Of a stretch of DNA of 64,000 nt, positions 16,344 to 21,749 are shown piece after piece (position 1 is the stretch's first letter; the number at the start of each line of letters is the position of its first letter). A program made the position numbers and the translations under genes. The notes below the pieces were generated by a model. It had not been told where the DNA came from, ran no database searches, and saw only the letters and a list, made by a program, of their open reading frames with translations. This stretch comes from Salpingoeca rosetta. Lineage: Eukaryota > Protista > Choanoflagellata. Location: assembly GCA_033442325.1 (NCBI GenBank), contig JAWQFM010000036.1:381501-445500 (forward strand). Reading direction: 5' to 3'.

Positions 16344-19300
16344 TCACACCCCGACTGCAAAGCCGATGCCTTGGTCCATCAGCATTCTGCAGCGCACATT
16401 CAAAATGCGCGGCGGGTAAACGAGGTCAAACCTCGCTTGCGTGTGCTGCGTAGACCCAGGCGCCCGGCCTTGCTGCTGTGGAAAGAGATCACAGGGCGGC
16501 TCCAAGTAGTAGTAGTTGGCAGGCAACGCAATGGTTGGTGGGCGGTGTGCAAACACGCGGTTGATGTACACCGCGGTCACGTCATCATGTCGCTGCTGGT
16601 GATGATGATGATGATGGTGAACACGACTGCTGTTCACACCGCCCACACCATCGCCACCGCCGATACATGTGTCCTGTGTCATCAGCTCCACCAACTCTTC
16701 AACAATGCCGAGAACGCCATGTAATGTCCCGCCAAACAGCCCACCGGCAAAGGAGCACGGCGCAGCGGTCGTGGCAGCGGCCATATGGCGAGATGCACCT
16801 CTACCGCCTTTGCGCATGTCACTCGTGATGCTGCTGCTGCTGTTGTTGTTGTTGTTGTTTGCTATGCTGTGCATCAATGAAGAAGAAGAAGATGATGATG
16901 GCAATGATGATGATGGGGGTGATGATGAGGGTGGTGGTGGTGGTGGGAGGCCGAACAAGGCCGGGTGTGCAACGCCAACCGTGGCTCCAAACACTTCCTC
17001 GTGCACTGTGCTGGTGAACACAACCGCAGCGTCAAACACATACACAAAGGCCATATCCTTCAGCAATGCCGAGTGACGCAAGATTGTCCTGTGCGTACGC
17101 AATGCCTCCTCCACACGCGTGATACCAGGGCGCACAGATGAAGCAGAAGACACCTTGCTCTTGCTGCTGCTGCTGCTGTCACATGCAGACGTGCCTTTGC
17201 TATGGCGCCTTCTGCCGCTATCACCACCACCACCACCATTTTCACCATCTTCACCATCAGTATCAGCATCAACATCTTCACCATCAGTATCAGCATCAAC
17301 ATCTTCACCATCAGTATCAGTATCAGCGTCGCGTCCACGTGTGCGGAGCACATGTGTGCGCTCGTGAGGACCAAGCATGGAGATGCGACCACACACGGCC
17401 CGGGCAGGCGCACCGCCACTCCTCCCACTGTTGATGCTGCCACCACTCTGCGCGTGGTTGTTGGCAGTCCTGCTCTTCTTGCTGGCGTCAGAGCCCGTTT
17501 CACCCTTGACACGTGCATCAGCACCAGTACCGCCATCATCACCGTCATTGTCATGATCATCACCGCTCACGATGACGAAATAGTGCAGCTCGTGTCCCGG
17601 CAAGAAAAACTCCTCTGCTGTTGCAATGAAATCGTCAACAAACGGACACCGCCAACGCGTTGCATCCACCACCACGCCAACCTTCAGCCCGCGCTGCTGT
17701 TGTTGCTGCTGCTGTTGCTGTTGTTGTTGTTGTTGTTGCTGCTGTTGTTGTTGTTGTTGTTGTTGCTGCTGCTGTTGTTGTTGCTGCTGCTGCTGTTGTT
17801 GTTGTTGTTGTTGTTGTTGTTGTTGTTGTTGTTGTTGTTGTTGTTGCTGCTGCTGTTGTTGTTGCTGTTGTTGTGGTGGTGGTGGCATGAGACTAGCATC
17901 TATGTCTGCCTCACCACCAGCCACCCCGTCAGCCGTACCATCTCCATCTTCCCCTTTGTCTTGCTCTCGCTGCTTGGCGTCTAGCAGGGCGGGCGTGAAC
18001 CCAAACGCGTACTTGAAGGTGGATCGGTGTGCCAACGTGTCTCGCACCACGTGCGTGAGGTTTGCCGGCCAGAACATGAGGGGATCATTTCTTGCGTAAT
18101 GCGGATTGAAGCGCGTGCACGTCAACATTCGAGGGGCCTGCGATGCCAACAACTCGGCAGCACTCCTGCTGCTGCTGCTGCTGCTACTGCTGCTGCTGCT
18201 GCTGCTGCTGCTGCTGCTGCTGCTGCTGCTGCTGCTGTTGTTGTTGTTGTTGTTGTTGTTGTTGTTGTTGTTGTTGTTGTTGTTGTTGTTGTTGTTGTTG
18301 TTGTTGTTGTTGTTTACTATGCTGCGCATCACCAGTGCTTCGCCACCAAAGCAAGGCGACACAACGTCAACCCGTCCACGTGCGTACACGACACCCGAGG
18401 ACAGCACGACCGTCACAGACACGTGGTCGTTGCAGTAGCCGCCGCCGTGCACATACCACAGCTGGGACAGTTCGAGAACCTCCGGGTGTGCCATGTCACG
18501 ATAGAGCGGAATTACGATCCGCTTGTTTGCCTGCTGGTACAGCGTCTGCACGTGACCCCGCCCCGCCTCAAGCACCAGCACGGCATCCTCAGGCAGACGA
18601 CTGTGTCCACCGCCACTGCTGCTGCTGCTGCTGCTGTTGTTGTTGTTGTTGTTGTTGTTGTTGTTGTTGTTGTTGTTGTTGTTGTTGCCATCATCACCGC
18701 CGTCACGACAGTGGCTATGATGGTGGGTGTCGGTGCTGTGAACGCCCTGCACTTTGATGCACAGACGCAAGAGGCGATCACGTGACCCGTGGCGAAATCG
18801 CGACGACGCGCTAACGGGCAGACACAGCGCCCCCATCATCCCACCGCCCGCATGCCCCCTGCTGCCGCTGCTGCTGGCAGTGTTGTTGCTGTTGTTGCCT
18901 TGGTCGCTGATCACGCTCGCGGCGTTCTCACGGTCACTTCCACCACCACCAGCACCGTCACCGCCATCCCGCTGATGCTGCCAGACGCATTCGCAGACGG
19001 GGTCAGGCTGCACCCATGGCGTGAGCACCAGCAGCTGCTGCATAGCACTCGTGGGCAAATAGGGCGCGTGCTTGTACGTGGCCTCAAACACGTGGACGGC
19101 AGCAGACGACAGCATGTGTTGCATGCGCGCGCGTGGCGGGATGTGCATCATGTAGTGCAGGACTGCGGGTCCGGGCAGGGGAAACAACACGTGCTCGTCA
19201 ATCAAGATGACGCTTGGGTCCTGCATGGCGTTGAACGTCTTGGTGACGAGGTGCGGTCCAATGGCCAGCCGGTCACTGCGATCATACGCCAGCGTGTCAA

Positions 19301-21749: not shown

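Follow-up and report, generated by a model that had tools for sequence, protein, structure and literature searches.

Glycosyltransferases of family GT6 make the ABO, alpha-Gal and Forssman antigens. The closest described systems for the gene presented here are, on the GT6 side, human ABO GTA/GTB, bovine alpha-1,3-galactosyltransferase (alpha3GT) and Bacteroides ovatus BoGT6a and, with regard to architecture, the tandem Golgi glycosyltransferases, in which two glycosyltransferase domains lie in one type II membrane polypeptide: the exostosins (GT47-GT64), the chondroitin synthases (GT31-GT7) as well as LARGE (GT8-GT49) (PMC9178029). In EXTL3, the GT47 domain does not bind uridine diphosphate (UDP) (PMC9178029). 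We analysed a stretch of 64,000 nucleotides from the choanoflagellate Salpingoeca rosetta (contig JAWQFM010000036.1, positions 381,501 to 445,500; hereafter the window), in which a minus-strand gene joins a GT32 domain to a GT6-derived domain. A literature search found no paper on a GT32-GT6 fusion, and an earlier reading of this DNA made from its letters (the sequence-only reading) had likewise known of none. GT32-GT6 is a new pair on the short list of tandem Golgi glycosyltransferases, themselves a known kind of enzyme, and the window locus is a degenerate member of it. Unlike the known tandem enzymes, it combines GT32 and GT6, both retaining GT-A folds. The reading that we favour, and consider probable, is that of a single-exon gene whose product, a type II and probably Golgi-lumenal protein of a small eukaryotic GT32-GT6 family, has GT32 as its one activity and keeps GT6 as a catalytically dead remnant.

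Assignment of the C-terminal region to GT6 required more than a domain scan. The isolated C-terminal 450 amino acids matched Pfam Glyco_transf_6 (PF03414) at 25.9 bits against a cut-off of 25 and over their first 40 residues only; within the whole open reading frame (ORF) the score was 20.8 bits, under that cut-off, and direct comparison with solved structures gave an E value of ~0.1 to ABO. On these results alone the assignment would be unproven. An exhaustive HMMER search with the C-terminal 450 residues found 15 representatives, the best of which was P0001 (E 7e-24), a complete ORF of 1590 amino acids from the transcriptome of the choanoflagellate Salpingoeca infusionum. All 15 matched Pfam GT6, at 57–154 bits (80–154 bits for the nearest relatives). 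A profile of the window GT6 domain and 12 relatives (A1) matched human ABO at 2e-59 and BoGT6a at 7.5e-59, and GT6 accounted for 55 of the 60 nearest named clusters in the ESM Atlas. The AlphaFold model of the domain, built from a 17-sequence alignment and hence guided by GT6 homologues, had a confident core (117 residues with a predicted local distance difference test score, pLDDT, of >=90) and disordered inserts; its top 50 Foldseek matches were all GT6 structures, ABO and BoGT6a among them (probability 1.0; template modelling score by target 0.54–0.72). Because relatives, profile, ESM Atlas and model with Foldseek agree, the C-terminal region is a GT6 homologue beyond reasonable doubt, as the sequence-only reading had proposed. 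A single-sequence AlphaFold run on the GT6 part gave an uninformative model (pLDDT 39), and word-indexed homologue searches with this part, whether by itself or within the full protein, yielded none, low-complexity words having dominated.

The domain shares fold and family with ABO, alpha3GT and BoGT6a, from which it differs in being the C-terminal module of a protein of 1801 amino acids and in carrying ~200 residues of inserts. It has kept the AGGxFGG loop, the hydrophobic core and the first Asp of the DXD motif. In contrast to BoGT6a (catalytic E192), it lacks the catalytic Glu, the second Asp of DXD and other invariant residues (Table 1), a loss that had been overlooked in the sequence-only reading. 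Among the 16 other GT6 sequences in the alignment, 15 show D-x-D at the DXD position. The catalytic loop reads D-D-V-T-A-V where relatives have (H/D)-D-E, D-E being present in all 15 others that cover it, and the profile alignment puts this loop on the WHDES stretch of ABO. I-T-R-V stands where relatives have G-W-P, so that the Trp is lost, and Thr replaces a conserved Arg that we took as ABO Arg188 by motif alignment. For the C-terminal R-M, which faces an invariant R-K, the alignment leaves it ambiguous which residue of the pair matches Lys359 of alpha3GT, one of the two basic residues (Lys359 and Arg365) that contact the UDP diphosphate there (PMC3961637). Altogether 21 of the 50 GT6 columns that are invariant in nine other fusion proteins were changed in the window; the same test changed 0–2 columns in P0001 and in P0022, a protein of 1794 amino acids on metagenomic contig L004 that was found in a further search and is the closest relative. 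Published work underlines how much the loss of the catalytic Glu matters: the E192Q variant of BoGT6a keeps only 4e-5 of wild-type activity (PMC3961637) and the metal-independent NXN enzymes of the family still require this residue (PMC3961637, PMC3516806). The GT6 half is thus most likely inactive, as judged from its residues.

The acceleration that accompanies these losses is limited to the GT6 domain and amounts to about four times. Tajima relative-rate tests of the window against P0022, with P0001 as outgroup, counted 62 unique changes in the window GT6 and 14–16 in that of P0022 (p 4e-8 to 2e-7). Elsewhere the counts for window and P0022 were 18 vs 28 in the N-terminal domain (N-domain), 25 vs 25 in GT32 and 17 vs 17 in the middle domain. 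Maximum-likelihood (ML) terminal branches gave the same picture: in GT6, 1.3–1.4 substitutions per site for the window compared to 0.36–0.40 for its nearest relatives, and 0.24 vs 0.24 in GT32. Contigs of the DNA run X1 were identical to the window over 16200-16820 and 16956-17275, which hold the mutated GT6 sites. As they match the mutated codons without difference, these codons are not assembly errors, and as X1 contigs differ from the window elsewhere, X1 appears to be another data set.

Four low-complexity stretches split the GT6 domain, as had been read from the letters; they comprise ~200 residues together, are gaps in all relatives and are lineage-specific. Between inserts 1a and 1b lies the conserved strand THVLRT (pLDDT ~92), which means that the 1a-1b stretch is not one intron. 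P0001 and P0022 lack the inserts; they retain DAD, DDE and RK, all three of which are missing from the window, and carry a further C-terminal extension of 340–530 amino acids. This extension, common to both (E 2e-16), had no match in Pfam or the PDB and left no trace in the window.

The GT32 domain matched Gly_transf_sug at 37.7–38.3 bits against a cut-off of 23 and is 59–69% identical to P0001 and P0022; none of the 25 family-invariant columns was changed, and the DTD noted earlier is intact. The nearest solved structure was Och1 (entry 9n3s). With the A4GALT/A4GNT-type GT32 enzymes and yeast Och1 it shares a Gly_transf_sug score above cut-off, an intact DXD and type II topology; unlike the former, it sits between two further domains and a GT6 module and gave no Gb3_synth (PF04572) match at E 0.1 or better. 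GT32 domains of 7 of the 10 family members did match Gb3_synth (best E 3.8e-6). The A4GALT-type kinship suggested by the sequence-only reading is therefore visible at the level of the family and not measurably in the window sequence itself. The domain is well conserved and probably active, to judge by its motifs. As far as sequence can tell of the competence of both tandem domains, the GT32 motifs are intact and the GT6 motifs lost. EXTL3 is comparable in that one of its two domains, like the window GT6 judged by its sequence, appears to be inactive and yet retained.

Frame and order of parts place both domains on one protein. By far the longest ORF of the window, on the minus strand, extends from 22229 to 16344 and has 1961 codons when counted from the stop upstream of it; the first in-frame ATG is codon 161 (21747-21749) and the stop codon lies at 16344-16346. 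The sequence-only reading had reported one uninterrupted ORF at 16344-19820: the uninterrupted frame stands, and the gene reaches ~1.9 kb further in the 5' direction. From the N-terminus, the protein consists of signal anchor, N-domain, GT32, middle domain, polyglutamine (polyQ) run and GT6-derived domain with inserts, and it is colinear along its length with P0001 and P0022, which have N-domain, GT32, middle domain and GT6 in the same order. This shared architecture, including the single S. infusionum transcript, upholds the proposal that GT32 and GT6 form one polypeptide. The signal anchor, a basic stretch followed by ~15 hydrophobic residues, has its counterpart at the N-terminus of P0001 and indicates type II membrane topology, as expected for a Golgi glycosyltransferase; the protein would probably reside in the Golgi.

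Three stranded RNA runs with the same species label covered the gene at only 0.2–5x. Run X20 covered 29 of 30 bins, with the first mate always on the plus strand. Such an orientation stems from minus-strand RNA in most stranded libraries, so that the RNA strand agrees with the minus-strand gene. Reads were present inside the insert and polyQ stretches, and no splice joint reached the reporting threshold across the gene in the three runs. Peaks of RNA at 16988-17381 and 18761-18957, with odd joints, were set aside as repeat artefacts. The cover is consistent with one unspliced transcript, at a depth too low to decide; the continuity that the sequence-only reading had asked of RNA data is thus seen in the sense cover of X20 and the lack of a splice joint, without being settled by them. 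That the fusion is expressed as one mRNA is better supported by the complete single transcript of S. infusionum.

X1 DNA contigs and nearly all X18 and X20 RNA reads differed from the window at 10–15 positions, within 19329-19919 and 20403-20420. Of the 2987 nt of the variant X1 contig, 591 nt aligned to the window, and the other X1 contigs listed were identical to the window. These differences may reflect distinct strains, gene conversion by a paralogue, or another, nearly identical copy. In the stretch from the N-domain to GT32, 10 of the 15 differences from the other runs are synonymous third-position changes, which supports both the frame and purifying selection in this stretch.

Taken as a mechanism, the favoured reading would have the conserved GT32 module transfer sugar in a DXD- and metal-dependent manner. 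The GT6 module has decayed: it has lost its catalytic residues while the GT-A core and the open frame persist, and it has taken up inserts derived from microsatellites (~200 residues), of which one lies beside the catalytic loop; nothing is left of the C-terminal extension that the nearest relatives carry. What remains of the domain may have a role as an appendage, in structure or in glycan binding, or may be on its way out. The GT6 frame holds no stop codon, compared to 9–35 in the other frames and ~18 expected after shuffling, and this open frame, together with the retained AGGxFGG loop and core, leads us to read the module as a pseudo-glycosyltransferase that has been retained, though probably inactive, and not as junk.

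This reading has to be weighed against one in which the protein is a truly bifunctional assembly-line enzyme, with a GT6 domain active through non-canonical residues (e.g. Asp1883 for Glu) and perhaps metal-free like the NXN enzymes. We think this unlikely, although it has its attractions: the frame is open, the GT-A core, AGGxFGG and first Asp of DXD are kept, metal-independent GT6 enzymes exist (PMC3516806), and such a mode of action is probable for P0001, P0022 and the other intact relatives. It would, however, have to absorb the joint loss of the second Asp, the Glu, the Trp of GWP, the Arg taken as ABO Arg188 and the Lys of RK, the change of 21 of 50 invariants at about four times the rate in GT6 only, and an insert that adjoins the catalytic loop, and NXN enzymes still require the Glu (PMC3961637). 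The assembly line for blood-group-like epitopes that the sequence-only reading had envisaged is not supported for the window locus, whose GT6 lacks the second Asp and the catalytic Glu. Several observations nonetheless count against a dead GT6 remnant. Bacterial GT6 enzymes without DXD are active (NXN, metal-independent; PMC3516806, PMC3961637), so losing one Asp is by itself no proof of inactivity, and a shifted alignment could place Asp1883, an Asp and not a Glu, at the position of the catalytic Glu. The GT6 frame is open over 450 codons and ~41–43% identical to the two closest relatives with AGGxFGG intact, which suggests continuing constraint, possibly with a changed function rather than none. 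P0022 may be either an orthologue or a paralogue of the window gene, and rare splicing may be compatible with RNA at 0.2–5x.

Decay of the whole gene into a pseudogene no longer under selection would account for the very low RNA level, the many microsatellite expansions in the ORF and the lost C-terminal extension. We regard it as decidedly unlikely, since the 5.4-kb frame is open, GT32, N-domain and middle domain evolve at the rate of P0022 with all 25 GT32 invariants kept, and the differences from the other runs between N-domain and GT32 are largely synonymous (10/15). Very unlikely, too, is that the low-complexity inserts are in-frame introns, spliced out to give a compact GT6 domain. They are absent from relatives, and the genome is intron-rich according to the sequence-only reading of neighbouring genes; yet no splice joint was seen, reads fall inside the inserts (at low depth), a conserved strand lies within what had counted as a single insert 1, and the inserts consist of trinucleotide microsatellites of the sort that commonly expand within coding sequence. 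Splicing would, moreover, not restore the lost catalytic residues. To the idea that GT32 and GT6 are two separate genes sharing one frame by chance we give almost no credence: nothing beyond the long low-complexity spacers speaks for it, whereas there is no stop between the domains, both lie on one complete S. infusionum transcript, the same domain order recurs in at least 10 clusters, and sense-strand reads occur along the whole stretch. A dead GT6 remnant attached to a working GT32 module thus remains the reading that we favour, with the features listed in Table 1.

Table 1. Features of the GT32-GT6 gene, in the order of the encoded protein (window coordinates).
Feature	Position	Strand	Basis
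Whole coding sequence, 1801 codons from first ATG	16344..21749	-	ORF list, translation
N-terminal signal anchor MVLWRPLLRWRRRLPP-TAIVVAVFVLMLLAL-RS	21651..21749	-	read from translation, no predictor
Conserved N-domain, including invariant CEKREVFALL block and proline-rich insert	20250..21137	-	three-way alignment
PolyQ/Arg-rich linker, (CAA/CAG) trinucleotide repeat	19956..20047	-	Tandem Repeats Finder, translation
GT32 domain	18981..19835	-	Pfam PF04488 Gly_transf_sug
GT32 DXD motif, reading DTD	19485..19493	-	invariant columns D116, D118, alignment A2
Cys-containing middle domain	17955..18842	-	alignment A5, 45 invariant columns
PolyQ run of ~60 residues, (CAA)n microsatellite, just before the GT6 domain	17698..17874	-	translation, repeat search
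GT6-derived domain, GT-A core of ~240 residues plus ~200 residues of inserts	16347..17696	-	relatives, profile, model
Low-complexity insert 1a, acidic/Gly/Ser-rich	17397..17555	-	gap in all relatives, pLDDT <50
Insert 1b, 27-nt tandem repeat encoding DTDGEDVDA units, then Ser-rich	17130..17318	-	repeats, alignment, model
DXD position reads D-A-A (GAC GCT GCG), second Asp lost	17025..17033	-	alignment, codons
Insert 2, polyproline/polyserine/polyasparagine	16761..16937	-	alignment, model
Insert 3, Gly-rich followed by His7, immediately ahead of the catalytic loop	16587..16658	-	alignment, model
Catalytic loop D-D-V plus 2-residue insertion, catalytic Glu gone	16578..16586	-	alignment columns
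C-terminal R-M, R-K in every other fusion protein	16383..16388	-	alignment

GT32 followed by GT6 was found in at least 10 protein clusters, Gly_transf_sug then Glyco_transf_6 being present in P0001, P0022, P0003/16/17, P0004/18, P0005, P0006, P0012, P0021 and P0023. The same subgroups appeared in the GT32 and GT6 trees, and in the GT6 tree the fusion proteins stood apart from the short and the GT2-linked GT6 proteins, which fits one ancient fusion event. GT32-profile scans of bacterial and archaeal genomes and IMG/VR returned only distant GT32 (19–37% identity over any extended match), none with GT6 in the flanks retrieved, and the same held among the matches listed from a metagenome scan with the GT32 profile. 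These matches added no member to the family and gave no instance of the fusion in prokaryotes or viruses. GT6 has been mentioned, without detail, in 'two unicellular eukaryotic species' (PMC3961637), and CAZy counts place it in cryptomonads (PMC6260743); the picture of a family found mainly in vertebrates, bacteria and phages, from which the sequence-only reading had started, is accordingly too narrow. Through the GT32-GT6 family, present in choanoflagellates and other microbial eukaryotes, GT6 gains a lineage that is eukaryotic and has DXD motifs. A more far-reaching proposal, improbable as it stands, is that this family represents an old eukaryotic, possibly holozoan GT6, from which the vertebrate ABO-type enzymes arose by vertical descent and domain fission and not by the transfer from prokaryotes that has been proposed, the window copy being a duplicate that is losing its GT6; the GT6 tree contains no vertebrate sequences. 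The window copy is a natural case of a tandem enzyme in which one module decays and the other remains under constraint. It would be a useful contrast in assays, and it cautions against inferring function from domain names alone.

Identity between the window protein and P0022 was 43–69%. Codon usage compared on P0022 (correlation of relative synonymous codon usage 0.86) is no more than compatible with the same genome. The stretch upstream of the called P0022 start (L004:1-231) is still coding-like, with CAG- and GAA-rich repeats, and P0022 has no signal anchor; its N-terminus is probably truncated, either at the end of the contig or through the gene call. Another metagenomic carrier contig, L001, is eukaryotic, since its Cactin and Arf genes are split into pieces. 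At L001:3429-7301, 2.7 kb upstream of the GT32-GT6 gene, a gene for 1290 amino acids combines Glyco_transf_15 and Nucleotid_trans, and tandem glycosyltransferase fusions seem common in this organism. Other GT6 combinations were also observed: metagenomic P0010 (1286 amino acids) consists of an FKRP_N stem, GT6 and GT2, with N-A-Y at the DXD position, and in P0009 GT6 is joined to a GT2-like piece.

The N-domain and the Cys-containing middle domain are common only to the window protein, P0001 and P0022. Alignment of the three gave 32 invariant columns in the N-domain, for which no Pfam or PDB sequence match was found. Its assignment as a methyltransferase was not adopted and is kept as a lead only: it came from the ESM Atlas only (0.79–0.89), two queries were inconsistent, and Pfam and the PDB gave it no support. 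The middle domain, likewise with no Pfam or PDB match, is broken by polyasparagine (polyN) and polyserine repeats at 18166-18314 and 18635-18687. The polyQ run before the GT6 domain is absent from P0001 and P0022 and is covered by RNA reads (bin 17579-17775). Trinucleotide microsatellites, including CAG and Ser repeats, are scattered through the ORF, and the frame decides whether one (AAC/ACA/CAA)n repeat inside it gives polyN or polyQ.

Downstream on the same strand lies a neighbour (14242-15791, -) that had been read as a sulfotransferase from sequence alone; its two ORF pieces gave no Pfam match at E 0.01 or better. PolyQ and a signal anchor similar to type II open this neighbour, which a (CA)n-containing gap splits. 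On both sides, the GT32-GT6 gene is bordered by long dinucleotide microsatellites, (CA)n/(GT)n, at 15197-15272, 15892-16034 and 22004-22132.

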